Positions 872-64,000 of a stretch of 64,000 bases of DNA are shown in pieces. A program made the translations under genes and the position numbers. Numbering within the stretch: the stretch's first letter is position 1; each line of letters starts with the position of its first letter. Source of the DNA: Octopus bimaculoides (lineage: Eukaryota); NCBI RefSeq assembly GCF_001194135.2, contig NC_068983.1:79386354-79450353 (forward strand). The letters are read 5' to 3'. Under the pieces are notes generated by a model. The model did no database searches. It was given only the letters and a program-made list of their open reading frames with translations, and was not told the origin of the DNA.

Positions 872-1248
872 AATCTTTAATTTGATGGTGGCCATGCTGG
901 ATTACCACCTCTAGTTGAACAAATCGACCCCAAGACTTAATCTTTGTTAGCCTGGTACTTATTCTATTGGTCTAGTTTGCCAAATTGCTAAATTGTGAGG
1001 ACGTAAACACACTGATATTGGTTGTCAAGCGATGGTGGAGAAACAAACACAGGCACTCACACAAATATAAACGTATATATATATATATATACAACGGGCT
1101 TCTTTCAGTTTCTGTCTGCCAAATCCACTCACAAGGCTTTGGTTGGCCTGAGGCTATAGTGGAAGACACTTGCCCAAGGTGCCATGCAGTGGGACCGAAC
1201 CCAGAACCATATGGTTGGTAAGCAAGCTACTTATCACACAGCCACTGC
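872..1248 (-). mobile_element. tRNA-derived SINE, family A head with CR1-like tail
   Basis: Reverse complement of the 3525-3910 copy: head (GTGGCTGTGTG...GGTTCGGTCCCACTGC), central (TA)n, tail ending ...CCAGCATGGCCACC. Confidence 0.8.
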
Positions 1249-1981: not shown

Positions 1982-2910
1982 TATGCCTATGATACAAAAG
2001 TATTACTGACATCCTAAGACTGCAGAATGACCTGAATGCAATGTATAAATTGGCTGATGAGAATAATATGCAATCCAATGGTGAAAAATTTCAAACCCTT
2101 CACTTTCAGCCCACAAACAATCTATAGCTGTTGTACACGTCACCACCAGGCAACGTAATCCTAGAGTTAGTCGGTGCATGACCTGGGAATCCACATGAGC
2201 AACGATGCAACTTTCCATGTACATATTGCTTAGATGGCAACATTATGCAGGTGGGTAGCAGGTTGGATCCTTAGATCCTTCAGGACCAGGAACAGAGACA
2301 CAATGCTTCTGCTTTGGAGAACTTTTGTCCTCACTCATCTGGACTACTACTTTCAACTGTGGTCCCCACAGTGTGTAAAACTAATTGCAGAACTAGAAGC
2401 GATCCAACACCACTACACAGAGAAGATAGACTCAGTAAAACACATGGGCTACTGGGAGAGATTGAGGGAACTGGGACTCTACTCCCAGGAGAGGAGACGT
2501 GAGAGATATGCAGTGGTAGACATGTGGAAAATAATGGAGAGTCTGGCACCAAATTTTGGAATCGAAATTTACAACAATCCTTGAACTGGACAGCACTGCA
2601 CAGTACCAAAGGTCTCATCTCCATCGAGGATACAAACCCAATATTGTAATAGCTTGGGATTCAAGGGGCCACAACTTTTTAATGCCCTACCACAGAACGT
2701 TAAGGATCTACAAGTAGTAGACATGGAAGTCTTAAAAAAACGTCTAGACAGTTCTTTACCTGCAATTCCGGATGAAACCACATTTCAGCAGGAGGTACAA
2801 AGAAGAGCAGCAACGTCCAACTCACCAGAAGCAATACTGAAAAAATCCCCAGATGCAGTAAATGCAATGCACTAGCATGACCTCAGCATCTGGCTGAAAC
2901 CCACAAAAGA
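1982..2910 (+). mobile_element. CR1-like LINE ORF2 remnant (RT end plus C-terminal region), 5'-truncated
   Basis: YAYDTK (YADD-like), LQNDLNAMYKLADENNMQSNGEKF, LWRTFVLTHLDYYFQLWSP, YWERLRELGLYSQERRRERY, GFKGPQLFNALP; stops and frameshifts present. Confidence 0.9.
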
Positions 2911-3524: not shown

Positions 3525-3910
3525 AGGTGGAGAAGTAGCTGTGTGGTAAGAAGCTTGCTTCCCAACCACATGGTTCAGTCCCACTGTGTGGCACCTTGGG
3601 CAAGTGTCTTCTACTATAGCCTTGGGCCAACCAAAACCTTGTGAGTGGATTTGGTAGATGGAACCTGAAAGAAGCTTGTCATATATGTATGTATGTATTT
3701 CTGTGTCTGTGCTTGTCCCCCTACCATTGCTTGACAACCGATGTTAGTGTGTTTACATTCCTGTAACTTTGCTGTTCAGCAAAAGAGACCAATAGAATAA
3801 GTACTAGGCTTACAAAGAATAAATCCTGGGGTCGATTTGTTTGATTAAAGGCAGTGCTCCAGCATGGCCACAGTCAAATGACTGAAGCAAGTAAAAGAAT
3901 AAAAATAAAA
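3525..3910 (+). mobile_element. tRNA-derived SINE, family A head with CR1-like tail
   Basis: A-box-like TAGCTGTGTGG, B-box-like GGTTCAGTCCC, central TA/TG repeat, tail GTGCTCCAGCATGGCCACAG...GACTGAAGC then A-rich end; many related copies in the window. Confidence 0.85.
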
Positions 3911-13468: not shown

Positions 13469-13514
<46 letters not shown>

Positions 13515-13640
13515 TGGTCTTCTTTTAGTTTCCATCTAGCATATCCACTCACCAAACTTTGAGTACCACACAGTGGGACTGAACCCAGAACCTTGTAGTT
13601 GGGAAGCAAACTCCTTCCCACACAGTCACAGTCATTCCTC
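13085..13640 (-). mobile_element. Two adjacent family A SINE copies
   Basis: Head-only copy at ~13085-13270 and a full copy at ~13280-13640 with central (CA)n and tail GTGGTGCCCCAGCATGGCCGCAG on the minus strand. Confidence 0.75.
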
Positions 13641-24089: not shown

Positions 24090-25020
24090 AAGAATGACTG
24101 TGTAGTACGAAGTTTGCTTCCCAATTACAGGTTTTTGGGTCCAGTCCCACTATGTGACACCTTAGGCAAGTATCTTTTACTATAGGCCTTGGCCAGCCTT
24201 GTAAGTAGATTTGGTTGATGGAAACTGAAAGAAGCCTATCGTGTGTGTATAATATAAATGATATAAATATATGCATATATGGGTACAGGACATCACCAAC
24301 AGTAAACAACATAAAATACACAAACAAATGAGTTCACTACACAAACAATGAGAGAAACAAATAGAAAACAGGACAAGTAACATAAAGAATGACCCTTCAT
24401 CAATTGTCGACTGTCTACCTACTCCTCATTTTGAGCATTGAATGACAACATGAGTCTTTGAAGACAGTTGCTCCCATAAGTAGCAAAATAAAATTTGGGA
24501 TTTATGGAGGGTCAAAGTTGGGAACAAAAACAGGACAGTGGAGACATACAAGGAAACCAAATGAAAACAAACATGGAGAGTCGTGAGACCAGAACAAGGG
24601 TAAAATAGCAAACGCTGGAGAAATATTTTCTTTGACCAGAGAAAAAATAGACGAGAGAGAGAGATATAGGATACATCCAGTCCTGAAAGAAAAGACAGAT
24701 GATCACATGAGGAAAAGAAAGATGGAGGATGGTCACGTGTGAGCAATGAGAGAGAGTAAAGGAAAAAGAGGTGGATAGAGAGAGAGACACACAGACAGAC
24801 AGATATGTGCATGTGTGTGTTACTATCTCCTTGGCCTGACATCATATGATAGTTGTAATCAAGTGTGCCACCTTCATGCAAGTGATGTCCATCATCTTCA
24901 ATCTTCTGTGAAAACATGTTTGGTCACTGGGAAATATTACCTTACATGGAAACAGGTGAGGGTTGGTGAGAGGAAGGACATCCAGCCATTGAAATTCAAA
25001 CTGCAGCCCATGGAACTTTC
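24090..25020 (+). mobile_element. Family A SINE (head plus RTE-type tail) split by a ~520-bp insert
   Basis: Head 24090-24245, unrelated sequence ~24283-24800 inside the central microsatellite, tail resumes ~24822 (TCTCCTTGGCCTGACATC...GGAAACAGGTGAGGGTTGG). Confidence 0.65.
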
Positions 25021-31946: not shown

Positions 31947-33216
31947 TTGGGAGGCTGGAAAGTAATGTTGTATTTTCAAACAAATAGTCTGATGTCAGAC
32001 CACAAATAGCCTACAAGCCAATCAGTTAAAGGTGTCCTTGTGATCAACCAATCAGCATGGTGTTAATAACCAAATGTTAATGTGGACATGTACTGTGTGG
32101 GTGTATGCTCTGTCTAATCCATGGAAAAAAAGGATTAGAGTGAGCTGCATATATAGCAGTGCAAGCTATACAAATTTTATAAGGGCAACAGTGCAGCACA
32201 TGCAAGGGAGAATTTACATGTATTGTATATCCTGATAGTGTTTGGAAATGTCAAAGGTTAGTTTAACAAATTCAAAAATGTTGATTTTGATCTTTTGGAT
32301 AGTTGTCAATCAGGAAGACCAACTGTTCTCAGTAATGATGCAATGAAAATATAATTGAATAGGATTTGTATCAAAGTAATGGGAACTAATCCCAGAGGCT
32401 TAATAAACTTTGGTCCTCTGTGCAAGATCATCTTAAGCAGATTAGAAAAGAGTATAAAAAAAAGGGAAATGGGTACCTCATGAGCTGTCTTCAGAGAATG
32501 AAGCAGTGCATTCAACAATTTGCAATAGTTTGCTAATCAAGAATGAACAAATACCTTTGCTTAACTGAATTCTACCAAATGGTAAGAAATGGATTGTCTA
32601 TGCCAAGATTAATTGTAAGAGACAATGGCCATCTTCAAACCAGATCTATACCCAAAGATTTTGCTGTGTGTTTGGTGGAACACAATAACTATTGTTCATT
32701 TTAAATTACTGGAACAAAGGAAAATCATCATTGCAGAACTTTATTGTCAATAACTTGAATATGTCAATCAAATTTTGCTCTAATGAGACAACAGAAAGTC
32801 CTAATCAACAAAAAAGTAGTCAATCTGCAATATGATAATGCAAGACTACATTCAGAGAAGATGACCCAAGAGAAAATAAATTCATTAGGCTGGGAAGTTC
32901 TACTACACTCTCTTTATACACCAGACCTAGCACCTGCAGATTTTCACTTATTCTGGTCACTTGAATACTTTACCAGTGAAAAAGCATTCAGAAGCAGAGA
33001 CAGTGTTGAAATAGTACTCCAAACATTTTTCTCTTCTAAAGAACCTGATTGATTTTTTTTTTCTCTCAAGGAATCAGAAAACTGGCTTTGAGGTTGGAAA
33101 ATGTTATTGCTAATGATGGCGATTATATTTTGAATGAATAAATGTATTTATGATATGTTTTAGGCTGATCTGAATTCATTACATGAAAGGCGACATTACT
33201 TTTTGGCAACCCTAAT
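31947..33216 (+). mobile_element. Near full-length (~1.27 kb) defective mariner transposon
   Basis: KWVPHEL at ~32466, QYDNARLH, LGWEVLLHSLYTPDLAPADFHLF; right TIR CATTACTTTTTGGCAACCCTAAT, diverged left TIR TTGGGAGGCTGGAAAGTAATG. Confidence 0.9.
32783..33052 (+). pseudogene. Mariner DD34D transposase C-terminal remnant
   Basis: Supplied 89-aa ORF contains the HDNA-like and YSPDLAPSD-like motifs; the upstream part is broken by stops and frameshifts, and the first catalytic Asp region reads NGKKWI. Confidence 0.85.
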
Positions 33217-33825: not shown

Positions 33826-34230
33826 GTGCAGATATAGCTGCATGGTAAGAATTTCGTTTCTCACCCACATTCTGCCAGGTTTACTCCCTGTGTGATGTCT
33901 ACTATAGCTCTGGACTCACCAAAGACTTGTGAGTGGATTTTGTGAATGGAAATTGAAAGAAACCCATCATGTGTGTGTATTTGTGTCCTCTTGTCTTGAC
34001 ATTATGTGATAGTTGTGAAATTACTGCCACTACCATATTAGCAGTGTCATTCATTTTCATTATTCAGTGAGAACATGTCTGGGGCCAGGGAAATATTACC
34101 TTGCTCTGAAGCAGGTGAGTGTTGGTGGCAGGAAGGGCATCTGGTTGTAAAAAAATGAACCTCAATAAACTCCTTCTGGTTCAGTGATAAATTTGAGTGA
34201 AACAGAGTAGATATTGACATGGCAGTGTAA
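33826..34230 (+). mobile_element. Family A SINE with RTE-type tail
   Basis: Head ...GTGAGTGGATTTTG...GAAAGAAACCC, (TG)n, tail TGTCTTGACATT...GGGAAATATTACCTTG...GGAAGGGCATC. Confidence 0.75.
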
Positions 34231-36590: not shown

Positions 36591-36814
36591 ATAATATGTG
36601 ACAATTATTTGGTAGCCATGATAAAACTCCAAGTTTTGGATGACAGGTCATTTTCATAGCATTTTTTTGATGGCCTGATAACTGAAGAGATGCCGGCGTG
36701 AGTTTCTGCCCCGACATCCGAAACTCGGAGTTTTATCATGGCTACCAAANNNNNNNNNNCGACATCCGAAACTCGGAGTTTTATCATGGCTACCAAATAA
36801 TTGTCACATGTTAT
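36591..36814. mobile_element. Small fold-back element with ~52-bp inverted arms containing an HHR
   Basis: 36591-36642 is the reverse complement (3 mismatches) of CATCCGAAAC...TGTCACATGTTAT; 36712-36749 is repeated at 36760-36797 across a 10-N gap. Confidence 0.85.
36671..36744 (+). ncRNA. Type I hammerhead ribozyme, intact core
   Basis: TGGCC-TGATAA-CTGAAGA(36682-36688)-stem II-GAAA(36720-36723)-CTCGGAG-TT|TTATCA-T-GGCTA. Stem I is 6 bp perfect plus 5 bp after a bulge; stem III pseudo-palindromic; GUU site after 36732; stem II has a bulged C next to the closing G-C. Confidence 0.75.
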
Positions 36815-45639: not shown

Positions 45640-46215
45640 TGCCTTGAACAAGCGGGTGCAGTTGTGGATTCATTGAACAAGGGTATTTAGCACTGCCAAT
45701 ATATGTGCAGGAGGACAATGGTTCAGGTCTTTGGGTCTCTGATCCTCCCTGTCCTGCTCCATAGTCATGTGACTTGGACACTGTTTGGGGCCCTTAGGAG
45801 CTGCCTGAATTCTTTTGATACCATGACATTTCACAGGATTACAGGTTACCATTTGGTTGGATTTATCCAACTAATGACTCTACTCAGAAACTGGGATGCA
45901 TTTCATTATTTGTATTATTCAGGAGCATCAGCTGACACTGTTTAGCCATGCTGCTCAATTTTCTGAGTTAGATCCTACTCACTGTATTTTCTTCACTGAG
46001 GATCCAGCTGGGTTAACAGCTCATATTGGTTGACCAGATGCCACATAGCTATGCCAGATGAAGAGATATCTTGCAGAGAGTGGGACTGACTGGCACTCTA
46101 TTTGATGGGTTACTCAAGAGGACCCAGGAATATATTGACAAATGATGAAATGGAAAATGACATGATAAATGCAGCAATGTGCTGCAATGGCACATTATTC
46201 CACACCTGATCTGAT
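45640..46215 (+). mobile_element. RTE-type LINE 3' portion (second RTE family)
   Basis: CRRTMVQVFGSLILPVLLHSHVTWTL (YGCETWTL motif), downstream HQLTLFSHAAQF / EDPAG remnants, ending ...CCACACCTGATCTGA. Confidence 0.8.
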
Positions 46216-49200
46216 GCCTTGTTATCTGAAATATCGATGGGAAAGCTGAACAATGTTCTCACTTATATCCAAAAAAGTTTGATGTTTATGGCTTGGACAC
46301 ATTTGGTCTTAGGACTGATCGATCAGGGTTGACTTGAGGATAAAGAACAACAGTAACTGTTAAGTACCCTGTATGTCGGTGAATAATCTGTTAACATTGT
46401 TGTGAAATAACACGGGTCTATCCACACTTAGGATTCCAGTTTTAGCTATTTTTGCAATTTATTTTACAAGTCAAGAATCAAAATGCTATAGAAAAGAAGA
46501 AGTTTTGGCTGCTTTATTATCCAATCTTTAGTGTTTGTTTATATTCATTTTGGCACTGTCAATTATTTGCACTTTTTTTTATGATTATCTGAACACTATT
46601 AACATAATTCATATCAAATATATTCCAGTAAAGATTGAAGGCTATTTTTTTTATTAAATATATTTTTTGCATCAGGGTTCTAAAGTGGTAATATAAACAG
46701 AATTAAAATGCTTAGGATAGTACATTCTCATGATACAAACCAATATCAAACAAATTGGAAGCCAGCACCAGCTTATCTTTCTGTTTATGCATTTCTGTTT
46801 TATTAGTTTTGAACAATTTTCTTTCCTATCAAATTTATGATCCATTTGATGTTTATGACTTTATGATTAATTTCATTTGGAGGGAAAGTATTTTGAAATA
46901 TTTATTACTGTCTGGTCTTTATGAGTGTTTCATCATTCATTCGGAAAAGTCTTCTCAGATTAGAGTAGGTTTGAGTTAGATATGCAGGTTAGATATGCTG
47001 TGGAATGGTTGTGGTCAAAGATGTCAATAAGTAGGTCATTATTATAAAGTATGTAAGAGCTGTGACTGAGACGCAAGACATTGATATTGAATTAAGCTGG
47101 CAATGGCCCTATCAAGCTATGTTTCAGTGAATCCTGATATGAGAAAGCTTTTGATTTTTAGAATTAGTGATGGATAGAGGACATAAACAGGCAGCTTCAC
47201 CGAGGGATTTCTTTGGCAAAAGTTTGCTTTATGTAGCACTCCTGGGGTTTGGGACTGCATATAAAAAGGTGTAGAGGCCTTATGTGGCTGTTTTAAAGTT
47301 AAAAAGCATAAACAGAGGAAAAACAATGTTTTTGATGTCTTTTAGAAGAAACTTTCAAGTGATGGATGTAGAAATAGTAGATGAGTAGAAACTTTCTTGT
47401 GAATGTGACATACAGTTAGTTTGTAAAGTCATTACATTTCTTCACTGAATAAAATATGGTTAACATTAGTTTACATAAAATTCTCTCATTGATTTCTTGT
47501 TTTTACTGATATATTATTCTTTTTTTTTCTCTTAGTCATTGTTATAGGCCTGTTCTTAAGAGCTTATCTGATAAATAATCCTCTAAAACAGAAATGGGTT
47601 TGTATCTCCATCTAAAATGTACAATGTGAAAACTTAAGACATATCACACTTATTTAAAAGCTAATGAATTGAAAGCAGATTTGGTTGTTAATTTCATTTA
47701 AAAATATGGTGTGCTTTTAATAATTGCAAACTATAATCATTTTAACTGTGCATTTACATATTATTTGAATGATTTTTGTTTTACCATGATCAAAACCATG
47801 TCCTAGTATATCAAAACATGTGGTAAAATGTTCTCTTGTTTAATGGTTTAGTTCTTTCTTTAATAGTGTGAGAATGCAAGAACTACATGCAGACAGAAGC
47901 ACTTTTAAATTTTACAAGAACAAACTACTAATTGCCACAATAACCACTACCTACATAAATATAAATAAATTAACAACACATCTAGAGAAGCAGTGGTCAC
48001 ATAAACGAAGGAGACTTTATGTAGCCACTCGATCTGCTAGAAATAGCAGCTAAATTTCCATGAAACCACACCCTACTGTTTATAAAAGAAAAGATACATT
48101 GGCTAAAATGTAGTTTAAATAAATGACATGATGGACACAGTTGGAACACTTTTGGTCCTGGATTTGCTTCTCCAGTGCCAGCTTGGGACTCAGCATCAAC
48201 AACATGAGAAGCAGTCATTCACAAACGTCTCCATATCCTAAGATATTGAGATGAGTTGGCTGGGGCTACCTGCCTATGGATCAGGAGTTCAAACCTATTG
48301 TATGCAATTTTGTATTTAAATTTTAGGATAGAACATTTTACAGTACATTCTGTTCACCTCCCTGCTGAAAATAGGTACTACCTCATCTACGAATAGATTC
48401 ATATCTTTCCTAGAAAGATTTATCTGTCATCTGCTTTTTCATTCTAAAATGGAAAACTAAGTACTGATCCTGAAAAAAAAAATGTTGATGTGTCAATAAT
48501 TACACCATACACACAACAGTAATTAATTATCCTCATCGTCATCATCATTGTTTTAATGTCTACTTTCCAATTGCATCTGTTAGAGTTCTTAGCAGCAGAT
48601 TTTTCTATGGTTAGATGGCCTTCCTATCACCAATCGATACCTATTTCCTAGCAAAATATTTCCGTGGCCAAATCTGGCTTTTCAGAATACTGGAAATAAA
48701 TGACATTCATATACAACAACTATGTGGTGTCAGGGCAAGGAGACACGTATATATACACACATTATATATCATGTATATATGCACACATTATATACCAGCA
48801 TGGAAAACAGATGCTAAATTATGATATATATTATGTATGACAAGCTTCTTTCAGTTTACATATACTAAATCCACTTGCAAAGCTTTGGTTGATTTGGTTG
48901 ACTCAGGGTCTTTAGAAGACATTAGCTCATGATGCCATGCAGTGAGACTGAACCCAAAACCATTTGGTTGGAAGCAAATTCCTTAACCACACATCTACAA
49001 TAATATCTTGAAAACAGAATTGGAACTTTTTGAAGTTTCTTGTATTTTAATCTCATAAACAAATATATTTACTATATTTGCTCATGTATAATTTGAGAAA
49101 TTTAATAGAAAACTTTAGGGTCAAAATTGCAAGGCAACATTAAACTCGAGTGTAAAAAATAATAAGAAATTGGGTTAAAATATATTAGTGGTTTTTATGT

Positions 49201-55740: not shown

Positions 55741-56496
55741 ATAACTAATAATAGTTTATAATGTATATTGGGCAGGATACCCTTGGATGAGAAAAGAAAA
55801 AGGGTAGACAGCTACTTACAGACTATCTTGCTGGTAAGATTAAAGCATTTAATTTAATACTAGAAAAACAGGAGCTATTTTAGTGTGATTGATAGCATGC
55901 CTGTTTGGATTGCAGAGGATGTGTGGTTCAAGTTCTGCAGGCAACTTAACATCATCCCCATCTGATCCAAAAAGGTTTTGACTAAACTTATCATGAGATA
56001 TTTACAGCTGAACTTGCTTCAAGACACATCGTAAATAAAGACTTATTTATATATTTCTCAATGTTTTATATTTGCATCCTATATGTGTTTAATATGATGA
56101 AAGAAAGCTGGGATACTGGTTTTAGTTTAAACTTGTATCACATCTTTCTGGGTTATAGAAGATGTGGTTTGAGTCCTGCATCAGCTTAACACCTATTTCC
56201 TTCAATGTATTATAAGCTATTACACAAGGCTGAATTCACTTTGGAACATATTATTAATAAAGTCTTATTTACATATTACTCTGTTTTCCTAAATTTGCAT
56301 TCTATTGTATAGTGTTCTAATTATGTAAACAAAAATAAATGTTCAAAAAGACTTTCGTAATAAACATATGATCTACATTAATGATAGATTAATGTACAGT
56401 TGAAGTGAATAATATTACGTCAATTCTCAACTATTACTTTTCTTTCATAGACAGCTTATTGTACTGTTTCTCTCTATAATAATTTTAATCATCATC

Positions 56497-56855
56497 TTAA
56501 CAAGTTTGTTTCCCAACCACTTGCATGGTCCAGTTCCCTTGAGAAGTGTTTTATATCATAACCTCCAGGCCTTAGGAGTAGATTTGGTAGATGAAAACTG
56601 AATAAAGTTCTGTGTGTGTGTGTTCATATCTCCTTGTCTTGACATTATGTAGTAGTTGAAGAGTTTCACTGTTATACAAACAGCATCCTTAATTTCAAAT
56701 TGGTGTGCGAATATGTCCAGCTATGATGAAATATTGTCTTGCTTGAAAATAGGTGAGGGTCAGTGACAGAAAAGGCAATCCAGCTGCAGGAAATCTTCAA
56801 TGAATTCTGACTCATGCAAGCTTGGGAAAGTGGATGTAAAATGATAATGATGGAT
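56497..56855 (+). mobile_element. Family A SINE with RTE-type tail
   Basis: Head, (TG)n, tail ending CATGCAAGCTTGGGAAAGTGGATGTAAAATGATAATGATG. Confidence 0.75.
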
Positions 56856-57339
56856 GTCTGTAACACTTTAGAAGTATCAGAAACTTAGGTAGAATTAATT
56901 CTTGACATCCTGTTGAAAATGAACTCAAAAGTCCAATCCTATAATGATTTCATTACATAGCAAAAAATGAATGATAGTGGAAGGGATTAACACTATCTGC
57001 CTTACATAAGACTTACTAACTTCCTTCAAAATAGCTGTAAAAAAGGTTATGGTTTGTGTGATATACCTCTCAGGACTGACTGATCAAAGCACTCTCATGC
57101 ACTATTGTCATTCAGAAAATTATGAGTTAAGCTAGATTCTGAGATTAAAACATCATTTGTTGTGTTTGCTTAATCCTAAACAAATTCTGATCAAACAAAC
57201 CTAGAATTCAATTGATCTTATTGAAGTTACAACTTTTGCTACTTGTTTTTAGATAACTCATGAAGAATTATCTAAAACTAATTGTCAACTAATTGCTTAG
57301 ATAATTACAGTTGATAGCTTTACAACTCACAGTACTAGG

Positions 57340-57790
57340 GACATGGTTGTGTGAAAAAGAAGTTTCCTTATCAACTAAACGATTTCAGCTTTGGTTCCAA
57401 CTGTGTGGTACCTTGGGCAAGTGTCTTCTGTATACCCAGGTCAAATAGTCTTTTGAGTGGATTTTGTAGATGGAAGCTAAAAGAAACCTGTCAAACATAT
57501 GTGTGTGTATGTGTGCCTGCATATGTGAGTTTGTGCAACCCTCTTTTGATATCACATGATAATTGTAAACAAGTGTCACTATCTCACAAGCTATGTCATT
57601 TATCTCCAATCTTCCATGAAAACAGTCATAGGAAAAATAGTCACGGGGAAATATTACTAAATTTGGAAACAAATAAAGTTTTTAACAAGAAAAGCATCAT
57701 GGTGTAGAAAACCTTTCTTAATGACTTCCATCTGACTCATGCAAACATGGAAACATTGATGTTAAACCTATGATGATGGTGACAGTGATA
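57340..57790 (+). mobile_element. Family A SINE with RTE-type tail
   Basis: Same layout as 56497-56855; ends ...ATGATGATGGTG. Confidence 0.7.
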
Positions 57791-57920
57791 ATGTGGCTCT
57801 GTCATAACTTACCATTCATTATGCAGAACACTTTTCAAAAAGTATTTTCTTCAGTTATTTTATTCATAATCATAATCAACATATCTACATTCCCCCACTA
57901 TGTGTGTGTATGTATGTATG

Positions 57921-57947
<27 letters not shown>

Positions 57948-57951
<4 letters not shown>

Positions 57952-59915
57952 TAGTTAAAGAATAAAAAGACTGGGTTAACGACTCAATATATCACCCCCC
58001 CCCCTCAATGAACATATATAAGAAATACAGCATAATCCGTCAAACATAAGGAATAAGAAGAAATAATGCAAGAAAAATTACACAAGAAGAATAAATAAAT
58101 AAATAAAAATATAGCATATAGTATAAAATTTTTATACACGAATATATTGTTTCAACCGATAACATGGAACTGAAAGAAATTGAGTTAAAGGTATAAAGCA
58201 ATACACGTGAATATCATTTCATAGGAGTTAAAAAAGTTAAAATTAATACGAATAAAAATTAATACGGAAGGAGTAAAAATTTCAAATATATAATATAATA
58301 TAATAAGATATAATATAAGTCGATATAGTAAAATAAAATGACATGAAGAAATGAGGTTCCATAAAGTAGTCTATCAGTTGAAAAAACAAGGACAGAAGTG
58401 ATTTAACACCACTTAGAATTAAAGTTCAAAGTTCTTCAAAGCCCTCGGGCACATTTCACGCCTCAAAACCAGTAGACACCAAAAGGCAAGTTCGCACCAA
58501 TCCGGCACACACAAGAGCGAACAACAGGCACCCAGCAGGTATCAGCAGGTAAAAGTTCAATTCCGCTCACCATGTCCAAAAAGGTTCACCACACATGAGT
58601 CAAAAACAATTACAGCACACACCAGGTATCCATCAGTAAAAACAATTTCACAAATTTCATACAATACCTATGGCCATTTTGGAGGTACACCACTGTATTT
58701 CAAAACACAATAGAGTGTAAATTGGTGCAACAATAGAGTGCAAACAGGCTGCAGTATCGAAACCTATCTACGAGGTTTCAATTCACCCTAACGTAAACTA
58801 TTACACTTGCTATTATTTGTTACTTTTAAAGAAGATGGAGGAAAAGTTTTCCTCCACCTTCTTGAAACTGTATAGAGGTAAAAATAAATTTAAAAGTAAT
58901 AAATAATAACAAATGTAATAGTTTACGTTAGGGTGAATTGAAACCTCGTAGATTGGTTTCGATACGGCAGTCTGTTTGGCTATTCTAAAATGGCAATTTT
59001 TTTTTTAATTATTTTGAATCCTCCAATTATTTACATAGGCTGGTCCATTTTGGTTATATATATTTGCTCTTTATAGAAATCATTTTTTCCCCCCCTTGTG
59101 CATGTCGTGACTTTGTACTTGTGGTTACCCTGACGAGTGGGTCATCACCAATTTACACTCTATTGTGTTTTGAAATACAGTGGTGTACCTCCGAAATGGC
59201 CATAGGTATTGTATGAAATTTGTGAAATTGTTTTTACTGATGGATACCTGGTGTGTGCTGTAATTGTTTTTGACTCATGTGTGGTGAACCTTTTTGGACA
59301 TGGTGAGCAGAATTGAACTTTTGCTTGTTGATACCTGCTGGGTGCCTGTTGTTCGCTCTTGTGTGTGCCGGATTGGTGCAAACTTGCCTTTTGGTGTCTA
59401 CTGGTTTCGAGGTGTGAAATGTGCGTGAGGGCTTTCAAGTACTTTGAACTTTAATTCTAAGTGGTGTTAAATCACATCTGTCCTTGTTTTTCAACCAATA
59501 GACTATTTTATAGTACCTCATTTCTTCCTGTCATTTTATTTTGCTATATCGACTTATATCATATTTTATTATATTATATTATTATATTATATATTTGAAA
59601 TTTTTACTCCTTCTGTATTAATTTTTATTCGAATTAATTTTAACTTTTTTAACTCCTATGAAATGATATTCACATGTATTGCTTTATACCTTTACCTCAA
59701 ATTTTTTCAGTTCCATATTATCAGTTGAAACAATATATTCGGGTATAAAAATTTTATACTATATGCTATATTTTTATTTATTTATTATTTCTTCTTGTGT
59801 TATTTCTTCTTATTCCTTATGTTTGATGGATTATGCTGTATTTCTTATATATGTTCATTGAGGAGGTGTGATATATTGAGTCATTAACCCAGTCTTTTTA
59901 TTCTTTAACTAATAT
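57948..59915. mobile_element. ~2-kb nested fold-back element, probable non-autonomous Penelope-like relic
   Basis: Outer arms 57948-58727 / 59146-59915 (~95% by manual alignment), inner arms 58741-58830 / 58889-58978 (6 mismatches in 90), innermost hairpin 58829-58863, HHR at the start of the right arm. No RT or GIY-YIG ORF seen. Confidence 0.85.
59121..59213 (+). ncRNA. Type I hammerhead ribozyme with long stem II
   Basis: TACC-CTGACGA(59130-59136)-56-nt stem II-GAAA(59193-59196)-TGGCCA-TA|GGTA. Stem I is 4 bp, stem III palindromic, AUA site after 59204. Confidence 0.7.
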
Positions 59916-60012
59916 TTTACTCTTGTATCAGTTATTCTGAGCACTTCTCCTTGCAGCCCTGTATAAAATCTATTGGTTTCCTAATAAGAAACCATTAATA
60001 TTACATATATGT

Positions 60013-60110
60013 ATACATACATACATACATACATACATACATACATACATACATACATACATACATACATACATACATACATACATACATACATACATAC
60101 ATACATACAT
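60013..60110. repeat. (ACAT)n microsatellite followed by (AG)n
   Basis: Directly visible. Confidence 0.95.
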
Positions 60111-63100
60111 AGAGAGAGAGAGAGAGAAATCACACTGTCTTGCCAACTGATAAGAATTATTTGCTGAGGAGGTCTAATAACACTGAAACATATATATTTG
60201 CTTTCAGCTGTTGGTTTTTCAGATCACATCTACTCAAATTTGCATTGTCTATTTTGTCTAAAATATTCTCTTCCCCTCTGCATATTAGAATTATATCACT
60301 TGGTTGTTTTTAGATTTTAAGTACACTTAGAGGAAGTTTATGTCTACTAATTTCTAAGATAATCTCAGTTATCAACAGGAAATTAGAATTCTCAACATAA
60401 AGGAAAAAAAATTATTAACGACTTGGATATGATAGAATATTCTTAGGAGACTAATAAATGCACAAATTTCAGTTTACAAACTATAAAAACACAACCTAAT
60501 GTTTATTTTTGTCATTTAATTTAAATAGAAAATAGAGTAATTATGTAATTTACCAAATTTTAATTTCTTATTAATCCATTCAGGTGTACACTGACTTAAT
60601 TAATAAATTTTCAGTTTCTTAGCTAAATTGTATCAGTAGTCTAGTAGTTCAACTATATGTAACTATAACAATCTATGAACTAACAACACTTTATGTAATT
60701 ACATTGCTGTGCTAAATGGAAAGGGAGACAAAACAGTGTTTACTAATTACAGTAATACTTCACTTGACGATGGCTCACTTTACAAAGCCCCAGGTTTTTG
60801 ACTTTTATGCTTCAGCTCACTTTTGTATGGTGAGCTGAAATTTTTCAAACACAAGATCCAAATTTTTAACAAAGTGCAAAAGTTTCTATTACATTAACAA
60901 ATGCTTTTGCATGTTACTGAGAAATTTGTAGAGAGCAAAAAAGAAAACAGCTTCTTCTAAGTAAACTCTAGAGTGGCTTTTTAAAAGGAAATCTACAAGT
61001 CTGTCTATGAGTGTTTGTGAATCAGTGATGGTGTGCACAAGTTTAGAGTGAGTGAAAGGGATTCAGGAAATAATTATAATAATATTTTTTTATTATAAAT
61101 AATCTTGACATTCTTCTTACTTTACATAAAATATTATTTACATTCTACTGTTGTTTTATTGCCATTTATTAACGAGTATTATAAATTTTATAGGTAAAAT
61201 ATTTTTCTGGGAATGAATTACAATTTATAACATTGTTACTATGGGAAATTATTGCTCTGCTTTATCAGTTTTCGCTTTACAAGCAGTCTCCAGGAACAAA
61301 TTTACTCATCCAGAAACAAATTAACTCATATATTGAGGCACTACTGTACTTTCATACATTCTGAGTTCAAATCTGCCTTTCATCATTTTGTGTTTGATAA
61401 AGTACCACTCAAGTACTAGGGTTGATGTAATCAATTAGCCCCCATTTTTCGAAATTTCTAGTTTTCTGCCGAAATTAGAAGCAATTATTAGCTTGAGTAC
61501 TTTTGAAGCATTGGTGTTGGCATAATTCATTATATTACTTCAGCAAATTTGTGGCCTTGTACTTTTGTAAGATATTGTTGGCTTGGTTGAATCAGTAATG
61601 TGTTTGGAAAAAAAGAAATTACAGATTTAGTTATGATCCTTTATGCTTTGAGTTCAGATCTCACTATTGCCAGTCTTATCTTTCTTCTGCCAAAGTTTCT
61701 AAAAATAAGTAGCAGTCAAGTGCTGGAGTCATTATCATCAACTACACATTCTCTGCAAATATGTAATCCTGTACTTGTGATATAAATCATTATTATATTT
61801 TATGAACATTTGAGGTGTTTAATATTCACCCAAAAATATACCAAAGACATTGTAATTCATTATACAATTTCATATTCATTAATATTTGTGAATGTACACA
61901 AAATCTTGTGCTGATAACATTTAAGAAAATTTTTATTGCTAATACGATATGGAAATAAGTGCAAGGCTAGATGCTCAACTTTTGCTGTAAATCTTGGGAT
62001 TTGGAGATTCAGAGCAAAAAGTGAACATTCAACCAAGAAATTGAGCATTTATTTATTAGATCAATATTCATCTGAAAAGATTTATACAACAATTGAAATT
62101 TGATAAATTATGAAATTATGTCTCCCCCACCCCCCAAGATTAAATTAATTTGCAAAAATGAATATTGAGTTGTGTTTAGATCTTGTAAGCTGACCATTAG
62201 TGTATCTATTTGTCCTCCCTATATATAATATTCCTGCTGAAAGCACTGATTTTAAAATTGAATATTTTACAAAAGATGATAGATTATATTTTAGAAAATA
62301 TGGAATATATCTTCTCATCAAAGGCTAGATATCAAATAAGAAAGTGTAACTTACAAAAGAGTATATTTTCAGTTTCATTGAAACATATTCTATATACGTC
62401 AGTTTGCTACTGATATATTTCATAAATTGCTAAAAGGCTGATAAGCAAAATTTAGAATCTTTAAATTGGTTTCTCTATTTGATGTGTCCACTCTTTATTT
62501 GTATATATGATCCAAAAGTTGCTATCAGCAAAATTCTGATTAACAACGATGCTCCTATTATTGATTATAATTTTTCAGTTTTATTTATTGTTTACTTACG
62601 ATGACTGTTATAAAGCATCATATTATGGTTATATTATTAAAAATAATATTTATGGATAGAATGAATTATATTAATTTAATTAATTTAAATTTTGTTGACA
62701 GTCTTTTAACTGTAATTTTCCCATAATCTTATTAATGTCACTGATCATGTTATTGTCATATTAATAATTATAAAAATAGGTGATGAATGAAGTGAGCTAT
62801 TTCAATAAAGTAAAATTTGTTAGGTATTTTTAGAAATACCATCCAACCCATGGAAAACAGATGTTGAGTGATAATATTGATGATGATGATGATGATAAAG
62901 ATTACTATGAATTTTGCATAGAGAAAAATAATACTCATTAGGTAAAGCTTGAAATTAGTGTACATACTAACAATTTCAGAATTGTAATTTAAATTATAAG
63001 ATATTAAAAATATTCCAGTAAGTCACCTTATTGAGCTTACTAGAATTTCAAATTGATATTAATGTACATGGACTCAGTCTGTTTACTAAAATATTCTTAA

Positions 63101-63597: not shown

Positions 63598-63869
63598 GTA
63601 AGTGATAAAATTTATTTTACATCCTTTGATATGCAAACTCAAATATTGTTACATGGAATTGTTTTGGTGAAAGATATCTTAATAAGTCTAATTATGAACA
63701 TACAGTATGAGTCATGTAAGTGTGTGTTATGTGTGTGTGTAGTGAGGGGAGAGAGAGTGAGAGAGCATGCATGCAATTCAAAGAAAGCACTCACGATTGG
63801 AGGATATTTGTATTAACAGCTAGAACTAGTGCTGATCTGAATCGAACTTGATACAAATTGTGTATTTGT

Positions 63870-63918
63870 GTATATATATGCATATATATATATATACACA
63901 CATACATACATACATATA

Positions 63919-63994
<76 letters not shown>

Positions 63995-64000
63995 TATATA
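63870..64000. repeat. Compound (TA)/(TG)/(ACAT) microsatellite
   Basis: Directly visible. Confidence 0.95.

Follow-up and report, generated by a model that had tools for sequence, protein, structure and literature searches.

The locus occupies positions 57948-59915 of the analysed window, a 64-kb stretch of DNA from Octopus bimaculoides, and consists of a non-coding inverted repeat of 1,968 bp whose parts and neighbours are listed in Table 1. The preliminary description had read it as a three-level nested palindrome with outer arms of ~770-780 bp at ~95% identity, inner arms and an innermost hairpin. Both BLASTN and global alignment recovered the inverted repeat at these positions. When the element was compared with the 64-kb window by BLASTN, its arms aligned over 788 columns with 92.0% identity including gaps (E = 0), while in the global alignment of the outer arms, measured at 780 and 770 nt, 725 columns match, 37 are mismatched and 26 contain gaps, corresponding to 95.1% identity excluding gaps. 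The inner arms span 90 nt at 93% identity, and the innermost hairpin pairs 58825-58845 with 58847-58867 about G58846.

The nesting itself did not hold. Alignment of 57948-58845 with the reverse complement of 58847-59915 showed that both halves (898 and 1,069 nt) are collinear from the end to the centre, with practically no spacer at the centre of symmetry. The locus is thus one collinear palindrome broken up by arm-specific indels rather than three nested structures, and it appears nested because segments of ~27 nt and ~167 nt occur in the right arm only. The DNA fold of 58728-58990 is one hairpin with a 27-nt one-sided bulge, in which the palindrome centre is predicted to be a good cruciform nucleus, in line with the cruciform potential suggested before.

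At the termini (TTAGTTAAAGAATAAAAAGACTGGG), both arms end at the same homologous base, and the last 32 nt (ATATTAGTTAAAGAATAAAAAGACTGGGTTAA) are identical between them. Uneven divergence along the arms was considered as a sign of gene conversion and rejected, since the counts per 100 nt (4, 3, 6, 6, 10, 5, 4 and 1) do not vary significantly (estimated chi-square ~10.8, 7 d.f.). There are three large indels, and in each case it is the left arm that lacks the stretch. The 13 nt specific to the left arm (CAACAATAGAGTG) may have been filled in from a template where a deletion was joined. Inside the arms there is a single degenerate duplication of two copies, with a spacing or size of ~90-110 bp. 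According to TRF, the arms hold only short AT-rich repeats with periods of 5-15.

Table 1. Parts of the palindrome and adjoining features, with positions in the window.
Feature	Position	Strand	Remarks
Left compound microsatellite (TGTA)n(TA)n	57899-57951	.	Adjoins the element; insertion target or outermost part of an extended palindrome
Left outer arm	57948-58727	+	780 nt; A-rich (349 A, 181 T); 14 CpGs kept (aligned part)
Left-arm-only 13 nt, CAACAATAGAGTG	58728-58740	+	Near-duplicate of 58706-58717; occupies the place of the right arm's 167 nt
Left inner part of arm ('inner arm' of the preliminary description)	58741-58830	+	
Central palindrome, TTTAAAGAAGATGGAGGAAAA-G-TTTTCCTCCACCTTCTTGAAA	58825-58867	.	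Centre 58846; 19/21 positions pair
Right-arm-only segment, ~21-27 nt	58862-58888	+	One-sided bulge beside the centre
Right inner part of arm	58889-58978	-	
Right-arm-only 167 nt	58979-59145	-	No left-arm counterpart; 2 CpGs (59106, 59134); holds CTGACGAG
Right outer arm	59146-59915	-	770 nt; T-rich on the + strand; lost 9 CpGs still present in the left arm
Right-flank segment, 86 nt	59916-60001	.	Unique; between TAATAT direct repeats (59910, 59996); no CpG
Right microsatellite (TACA)n(GA)n	60002-60126	.	(TACA)n part mirrors the left (TGTA)n

The proposed lack of coding capacity was borne out, with no Pfam match for any open frame of the element or for the concatenated open frames. A 96-codon frame open in both arms was rejected as a coding candidate, since it has neither a Pfam match nor a homologue among 5.8 billion proteins and most of its differences change the amino acid (8 changes for ~11 nucleotide changes). 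No Rfam family reached the gathering score for the element. Sub-threshold Rfam matches were seen to mir-297 and mir-1277 on the microsatellites and, far below the cut-offs, to MIR7723 and mir-627 on the central hairpin; they reflect only the hairpin shape or the microsatellite. A hammerhead, and with it a Penelope-like element or retrozyme, was prompted by CTGACGAG near 59130 and discarded, as Rfam gave no hammerhead at E <= 10 in 57500-60400. No second copy or relative of the arms was found within the 64-kb window. Exact 20-31-mers of the palindrome had no match in metagenome, viral and prokaryotic collections, as expected for collections that do not include the host genome. For spurious ORF calls and exact look-ups for further copies, nothing is on record.

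The element stands out from its surroundings in CpG content at an equal G+C content (0.318 versus 0.324 outside). It contains 31 CpGs, with an observed/expected ratio of 0.62, compared with 6 per 2 kb in each of the 2-kb flanks (0.12 and 0.14) and a ratio of 0.18 for the remainder of the window. A ratio above 0.50 is reached by none of 543 further segments of 1,968 nt (Poisson p ~7e-9). This CpG-rich block stops at the ends of the palindrome: its first and last CpGs lie at 57980 and 59740, and the nearest CpGs of the flanks at 57644 and 60419. A second CpG-richer block at 51-53 kb, partly made up of (TG)n with CG interruptions, is unrelated to the palindrome. The arms have 17 CpG sites versus ~20 expected, which indicates a CpG-rich ancestor of both arms. 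Twelve of these 17 sites are kept in one arm only, corresponding to a decay in situ ~20 times faster than that of other sites. Of the 37 arm substitutions, 24 (65%) are transitions, with a concentration at CpG, and 12 lie at CpG sites. The CpG contrast together with the one-arm CpG loss indicates that the divergence is biological and, judging from the decay, that the DNA of the element is probably methylated. It further indicates that the entire palindrome is younger than the surrounding DNA, and the locus looks like a fairly recent insertion into an old, repeat-rich genome.

The substitution pattern also bears on whether a chimeric fold-back read or a mis-join created the palindrome. N gaps at 794, 30526, 36750 and 49626 mark the assembly as scaffolded, and false palindromes occur in some long-read data. 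However, the substitutions carry the signature of germline mutation and not a sequencing-error pattern, they are accompanied by multiple arm-specific indels, and the palindrome is embedded in unique sequence at both ends, with no N within 8 kb. We agree with the preliminary description that an artefact is unlikely and put its probability at next to nothing.

The right arm shows 18 GC-to-AT transitions and the left arm 6, a threefold excess (p = 0.02) that counts against a foldback element, since it would not be expected had both arms arisen together. The CpG observed/expected ratio is also lower in the right arm (0.45 versus 0.70). This asymmetry would suit two independent tail-to-tail insertions of one ~1-kb element at different times, with the right copy being the older, and the several indels between the arms are of the kind found among family members. 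The asymmetry is weak, however, with p = 0.15 when only CpG sites are counted. Moreover, the second copy would have had to insert precisely where the first one stops, leaving a 21-bp central palindrome with no spacer or target duplication in between, and no third copy exists in the 64 kb. We find such a double event barely credible.

The left edge of the palindrome lies, as reported, in a (TA)n tract (57929-57951). The ends read TA-TTAG...CTAA-TA inside the (TA)n tract, with TA at 57949-50 and 59913-14, and this TA could equally be an extension of the inverted repeat. Perfect direct repeats flanking the palindrome do not exceed 4 bp, and an unambiguous target duplication is absent. The best 8-mer comparison for a target duplication matches at five of eight positions (ATATATAT versus ATATTTTA), and only TA or ATAT is perfect, either one being confounded with the palindrome and with the mutable (TA)n tract. 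The earlier statement that no target duplication is evident is therefore right as a reading of the ends but not as a sign of absence, because the palindromic sequence of a TA or ATAT duplication would make it blend into the inverted repeat.

The flanks consist of old SINE-like repeats, 70-80% identical. The SINE-like repeats of the window resemble those of Octopus. The window further contains an RT-like ORF, whose only matches were ENA entries at 41-50% identity, while look-ups of ORFs from the window returned no recorded match. It also contains a mariner-type transposase remnant (32759-33049; TIR TTAGGGTTGCCAAAAAGTAATG, starting TTAGGGTTGCC), which shows that TA-targeting transposons were once active in this genome; a search with this fragment gave no candidates.

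The flanks also hint at the main rival origin, an inverted duplication, which we consider clearly less likely than not. A young insert of ~1 kb, for instance a retroelement, would have been copied back on itself together with the neighbouring (TA)n(TACA)n microsatellite, during integration or shortly afterwards. Snap-back or template-switching synthesis would be responsible, with either a reverse transcriptase doubling back along its own cDNA or replication folding back at the short central inverted repeat. The product would be a one-off that is not mobile as such, and the large arm-specific gaps and the 13-nt filler would mark template jumps. Runs of at least three TGTA units occur at only six loci in the 64 kb, and the chance of finding a mirrored pair no more than 100 bp away from each end is ~0.003-0.01 (post hoc). 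Once the 86 nt between the TAATAT repeats are removed, the left flank and the reverse-complemented right flank are closely similar. The mirrored (TGTA)n/(TACA)n tracts suggest that the symmetry may run past the supposed termini, which would fit an inverted duplication better than a foldback element. The spacerless centre, the absence of all three large indel stretches from the left arm, the templated-looking filler at one junction and the single-copy structure within the window point the same way, as do the (TA)n(TGTA)n or (TG)n microsatellites borne by the SINE-like repeats of the window.

However, the flanks share no homology beyond the microsatellites, and dyad-symmetric compound microsatellites exist independently in the window (63849-64000), so the mirrored flanks could be a pre-existing target. 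The turn-around would also have to match the inner boundary of the young sequence, as no CpG-rich remainder is left outside the palindrome. Neither a poly(A) tail nor another recognisable retroelement hallmark is present, and the Rfam hammerhead is lacking. Palindromes formed by fold-back or hairpin-primed replication, and their stabilisation by breaks at the centre, are established in bacteria, yeast and mouse. The present palindrome resembles them in its spacerless centre and in the clustering of indels near the centre, but replication fold-backs duplicate resident sequence of arbitrary extent, whereas here the two arms are both CpG-young and stop at one homologous base.

A foldback-type mobile element, which the preliminary description did not consider, is the most likely origin of the palindrome. 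More precisely, we see about an even chance that a non-autonomous mobile element of the foldback or long-TIR kind entered a TA of the (TA)n tract here. The shared homologous stop and the identical 32-nt termini are expected if the palindrome was the insertion unit. From the sequence we infer the following course. The palindrome would have arrived as one unit, later than the surrounding DNA and with each half originally ~1 kb long, when a transposase encoded elsewhere cut and pasted it into a TA of the microsatellite. The resulting duplication of 2 bp (TA) or 4 bp (ATAT) would now look like the outermost positions of the inverted repeat. After insertion, the halves would have diverged by ~5% through fast decay of methylated CpGs, ordinary substitutions and slippage. 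Larger indels would have built up near the centre (~27 nt at 20 nt from it and ~160 nt at 130 nt), as is known for long palindromes, whose perfect centre is unstable.

Foldback elements have very long TIRs and a small middle domain, are non-coding, and are thought to have arisen repeatedly from different superfamilies (PMC4079207). The foldbacks of Drosophila (FB, Galileo, Tetris), sea urchin and plants consist almost entirely of their TIRs (PMC4079207), as does the palindrome. Foldback TIRs are hundreds of bp long and may exceed 1 kb (PMC4079207), compared with ~0.9-1.07 kb per half in the palindrome, which also shares the small or missing middle domain and the non-coding nature of foldbacks; their non-autonomous copies are often heavily rearranged (PMC4079207). 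In contrast, described families carry arrays of tandem sub-repeats in their TIRs, and the lack of such arrays in the arms counts against a foldback element when FB, Galileo and Tetris are taken as the standard. Described foldbacks also make 7-10-bp target duplications (Mutator or P superfamily), versus at most 2-4 bp, and palindromic, here. That no perfect repeat of more than 4 bp flanks the palindrome speaks against Mutator, hAT and P, the superfamilies to which most described foldback elements belong. A further point against is that the palindrome occurs as a single copy in the 64-kb window, repetitiveness being the defining property of a transposon.

Closest in overall design, and almost the same as the palindrome, is Tc4 of Caenorhabditis elegans, a fold-back Tc1/mariner element with a DDD transposase. 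Tc4 was reportedly described by Yuan et al. in 1991 as 1.6 kb long, with ~774-bp inverted repeats, a short loop and a non-coding form that is mobilised in trans. It inserts at CTNAG, duplicates TNA and has so far been reported from Ecdysozoa only (PMC11071193). The target signature of Tc4 was looked for and rejected: with (TA)n to the left of the palindrome and ATATTTTAC to its right, there is no C-TNA...TNA-G arrangement. Other candidates were weighed as well. Palindromic MITEs of the Tc1/mariner type (MADE1, Stowaway-like) use a TA target, have a non-coding body, are shorter than 600 bp and reach high copy numbers. The palindrome is like them in its putative TA target, its wholly palindromic non-coding body and its TTAG ends, which also occur in some mariner TIRs; in contrast to these short, high-copy elements, it measures 2 kb. 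Kinship with the mariner remnant at 32.8 kb, the only one in the window, was rejected, since its TIR (TTAGGGTTGCCAAAAAGTAATG) and the palindrome ends have only TTAG in common. The target signatures of piggyBac and PIF/Harbinger were rejected as well. For piggyBac, the TTAA at 57955 and 59905 is internal, with the inverted repeat running 7 bp further out. For PIF/Harbinger, TTA at the left end and TAA at the right are reverse complements and not a direct TWA duplication.

The earlier proposal that the locus would give a very long dsRNA if transcribed agrees with the predicted folding. The minimum free energy is -1339 kcal/mol for the + strand and -1331 kcal/mol for the - strand, versus -405 +/- 13 kcal/mol for shuffled sequences, and either strand, if transcribed, would fold into an arm-to-arm duplex with ~740 bp paired. 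Such folding on either strand would be called for if the locus were a selected hairpin-RNA gene, its hairpin being diced to endogenous siRNAs against a target gene or serving as a regulated ADAR substrate, a reading close to the function suggested in the preliminary description. Hairpin-RNA loci of Drosophila are likewise young inverted duplications. Repeat editing is also widespread in cephalopods (PMC9068888). The arm differences give no indication that pairing is maintained, however: per strand, the 18 C/G-to-T/A differences comprise nine that are compatible with G:U pairs and nine that disrupt pairing as C:A. The free decay of CpGs and the large one-sided indels look neutral, the 64-kb window contains nothing related to the arms that could act as a target, and the miRNA-family matches remain sub-threshold, with no Rfam family at the gathering score. 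A selected hairpin-RNA gene is very unlikely on these grounds, and no selected function of the locus is indicated.

If the locus is transcribed, the palindrome would form a long imperfect RNA duplex subject to ADAR editing and possibly to dicing, like any young inverted repeat. Known sources of ADAR-edited dsRNA, such as inverted Alu pairs, a palindromic and heavily edited frog repeat, and young metazoan repeats (PMC526178, PMC5625713, PMC9989829), are likewise young and of low divergence and form long intramolecular duplexes. These repeats are defined by observed editing of transcripts, whereas the palindrome is known from its DNA and predicted folding. Being an ADAR substrate would not be special, because the editing of young inverted repeats is a general metazoan pattern (PMC9989829). 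An exceptionally high fraction of loci in octopus is reported to be able to form long near-perfect dsRNA (PMC5625713).

A bolder proposal, which we consider quite unlikely, is that the palindrome belongs to an undescribed family of spacerless ~2-kb foldback transposons mobile in a lophotrochozoan, possibly cephalopod, genome. Such a family would use a transposase that targets TA or ATAT and would have a Tc4-like design outside Ecdysozoa. Through its copies it would contribute, as a separate source, to the long near-perfect dsRNA that sets octopus apart as an outlier in hyper-editing.

If the locus is a copy of a foldback transposon, it would add one more family of a known kind and would be useful chiefly for repeat annotation. 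The CpG contrast offers a simple, tool-free way of dating insertions against their flanks in CpG-depleted genomes. Palindromes on the 2-kb scale are prone to recombination and breakage and can seed inversions, as with Galileo and DAIBAM in Drosophila (PMC4079207). In octopus, young inverted repeats are raw material for widespread repeat-directed A-to-I editing (PMC9068888, PMC5625713), and a catalogued family of perfect foldbacks would supply defined substrates for studying this editing pathway.

The inverted repeat at 57948-59915 is a real, correctly placed and well-preserved palindrome, simpler in architecture than first reported. When it was compared with the window by BLASTN, only two matches appeared besides itself: the reverse-strand pair of outer arms, with E = 0 and, gaps counted, 92.0% identity over 788 columns, and a less strong one at the centre. 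Aligned globally, the outer arms agree at 725 positions, with 37 mismatches and 26 gap columns; leaving gaps out, identity is 95.1%. The 90-nt inner arms (93% identity) and the innermost hairpin of the preliminary description are present too, but the three nested levels are not. Alignment of the sequence left of 58846 with the reverse complement of that to its right showed that the halves stay collinear from either end all the way inward, forming a single palindrome in which two one-arm indels mimic nesting. The halves, each ~1 kb originally, differ by point substitutions, four small outer-arm indels (3, 14, 8 and 1 nt) and two larger segments carried by the right half only. Opposite the longer of these, the left half has just 13 nt (CAACAATAGAGTG), nearly repeating the sequence 23 nt upstream. 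At the centre, TTTAAAGAAGATGGAGGAAAA-G-TTTTCCTCCACCTTCTTGAAA, 19 of the 21 positions pair and there is virtually no spacer; 58728-58990 folded as DNA into one hairpin with a one-sided 27-nt bulge (-94.5 kcal/mol, z = -24.5). Long palindromes get rearranged near the centre until symmetry is broken; the two large indels, neither more than ~300 nt from the centre, may reflect such a rearrangement. Base composition in the arms is strongly strand-asymmetric (left arm: 349 A versus 181 T), and the arms contain one degenerate internal duplication (spacing 90-110 nt) and no tandem sub-repeat arrays.

Coordinates and CpG content of the palindrome, its surroundings and repeat-derived features of the window
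Feature	Positions	Length	CpGs	CpG observed/expected	G+C	Basis
Element	57948-59915	1,968 nt	31	0.62	0.318	
Left flank	55948-57947	2 kb	6	0.12	0.322	
Right flank	59916-61915	2 kb	6	0.14	0.292	
Rest of window	1-57947		273	0.18	0.324	
Outer arms	57948-58727; 59146-59915	780; 770 nt				
Inner arms	58741-58830; 58889-58978	90 nt				
Right-half-only segment next to centre	about 58862-58888	~27 nt				alignment of halves
Right-half-only segment	58979-59145	167 nt				alignment of halves
Left compound microsatellite (TGTA)n(TA)n, abutting element	57899-57951					
Right compound microsatellite (TA)(TACA)n(GA)n	59999-60126					
SINE-like family copies	3579-3698; 1094-1244 (-); 13474-13565 (-); 24170-24256; 33898-33985; 48832-48891 (-); 57344-57535					
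Fragments resembling C-terminal part of non-LTR retrotransposon reverse transcriptases	2234-2872 (+); 45691-45942 (+)					

CpG depletion is strong across the window (observed/expected 0.18). Across 543 other windows of the element's size the ratio never exceeds 0.50, and the Poisson probability of its CpG count against ~9 expected is ~7e-9. High CpG content is confined to the palindrome, whose first and last CpGs are at 57980 and 59740, while the nearest flanking CpGs are at 57644 and 60419. The only other block nearing this level lies at ~51-53 kb (50.8-53.5 kb, up to 0.50) and owes part of its content to (TG)n with CG interruptions. Among 17 CpG sites in the aligned outer arms, five are common, three are right-only and nine are left-only, the right arm reading TG or CA at the latter. 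About 35% of the CpG copies have decayed, compared with ~1.7% per arm at other sites. The arm differences therefore carry a germline mutation signature, which contradicts an assembly artefact, already doubted in the preliminary description; this fifth-ranked explanation is extremely improbable. With 17 CpG sites versus ~20 expected, the common ancestor of both arms was near CpG equilibrium, unlike the old flanks, so the whole palindrome arrived later and is not resident sequence duplicated. Judging from these patterns, this DNA was probably subject to methylation and to decay at its present site from the time the arms were identical. Arm decay is asymmetric, the left and right arms having CpG observed/expected values of 0.70 and 0.45, and strand bias does not account for this. 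The right arm's threefold excess of GC-to-AT transitions (18 differences from C/G left to T/A right versus 6 opposite, p = 0.02) is the sole hint of two independent tail-to-tail insertions, a very improbable origin that we rank fourth.

The inverted repeat extends as far as ATAT|TAG...CTA|ATAT, with the next bases, T57947 and T59916, unpaired. The terminal 32 nt are the same in both arms and absent elsewhere in the window. No evident target duplication had been described. Perfect direct repeats around the element do not exceed 4 bp, and 8-mers match at 5/8. The ends could hold a TA duplication (element 57951-59912, with ends TTAG...CTAA) or an ATAT one (element 57952-59911); either, being palindromic, is indistinguishable from the inverted repeat. 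The Tc4 element of C. elegans has almost the dimensions of the palindrome. The ends lack the TTAA signature of piggyBac, the TWA of Harbinger and the CTNAG/TNA target of Tc4 (PMC11071193). Elsewhere in the window, a degenerate C-terminal mariner-type transposase remnant (32759-33049, + strand) matches SETMAR and Mos1 structures (E = 3e-16 to 1e-14) and was not reported by Pfam. It has TIR-like ends near 31953 and at 33186-33215, with a terminal repeat of the TTAGGGTTGCCAAAAAGTAATG type; this TIR (TTAGGGTTGCC...) has only TTAG in common with the palindrome ends.

The left end adjoins (TGTA)n(TA)n, which includes the (TA)n tract noted previously. The right array, ATATATGTATACA(TACA)n(GA)n, lies 86 nt past the element end and is the mirror image of the left one. 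Since no more than six loci of the window carry arrays of at least three TGTA units, the mirrored pair is unlikely by chance (roughly 0.003-0.01, post hoc). The 86-nt segment has a TAATAT direct repeat on each side (59910 and 59996); with it deleted, the reverse complement of the right flank reads (TGTA)n...TACATATATGTAATATTAG, resembling the left flank. Past the microsatellites there is no flank-to-flank similarity. Either a compound microsatellite with dyad symmetry received the element in its (TA)n core, or the microsatellites were once part of the palindrome. Such a dyad-symmetric array exists on its own at 63849-64000 (TGTG..(TA)n..CACA(TACA)n..(TG)n(TA)n), continuing past the window end. 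The second alternative would favour an inverted duplication that arose once, at integration, through snap-back or template switching. The lack of a spacer at the centre and the confinement of all large gaps to one arm, one with templated-looking filler, also point to this second-ranked origin, which we consider possible yet rather unlikely.

The earlier claim of no coding capacity holds. No open frame of the element has a Pfam match, and a 96-codon frame open in both arms has no homologue in a 5.8-billion-protein collection. Between arms, this frame shows 8 amino-acid differences for ~11 nucleotide changes and hence is not under coding constraint. Across the whole window Rfam gave no hit at its gathering thresholds, and at E <= 10 only sub-threshold miRNA matches of microsatellite or hairpin shape. 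Because no hammerhead appeared at E <= 10, we do not regard the CTGACGAG string close to 59130 as the core of a ribozyme. A selected hairpin-RNA gene, ranked third, is improbable, as decay of the arms is unconstrained and does not spare pairing in particular.

The window is AT-rich (~32% G+C), with four N gaps and abundant microsatellites and degenerate interspersed repeats; decayed SINE-like repeats (70-80% identical) flank the element. One SINE-like family (...GTGAGTGGATTTGGTAGATGGAAACTGAAAGAAGCC...), which we take to resemble an abundant Octopus SINE, continues into (TA)n, (TGTA)n or (TG)n microsatellites, its copies being 62-80% identical. The first reverse transcriptase-like fragment has relatives only among anonymous ENA metagenome sequences (41-50% identity). 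SINE-like copies on either side of this ORF make up the inverted arms of a second potential dsRNA-forming pair (880-1201 and 3572-3879; ~320 nt, 76-86% identity, 2.4 kb apart). A MITE-like inverted repeat (36591-36642 and 36763-36814; 52-nt arms, 94% identity) has a 120-nt spacer including the N gap 36750-36759.

We rank first a foldback-type non-autonomous transposon, at about an even chance; repetitiveness is what defines a transposon, and the search for copies covered the window, where the palindrome occurs once. This reading accounts for the discrete CpG-young block, for both arms stopping at the same point, for the absence of coding capacity and for the TA-rich target, into which a young non-coding element would have inserted. 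It also agrees with a well-known kind: in foldback elements the TIRs are very long, the middle domain is small and ORFs are lacking, and several superfamilies are considered their source (PMC4079207). On this best reading, the palindrome would add a foldback-type insertion to that kind. If transcribed, it would form a very long dsRNA, as proposed earlier: predicted folds of the two strands reach -1339 and -1331 kcal/mol, whereas shuffled sequences give -405 +/- 13; of about 885 pairs, 737 run arm to arm. Young inverted repeats are edited across metazoans as a general pattern (PMC9989829), cephalopods show widespread repeat-directed editing (PMC9068888), and in octopus the fraction of loci capable of long near-perfect dsRNA is unusually high (PMC5625713); the locus, if transcribed, would then be one among many.
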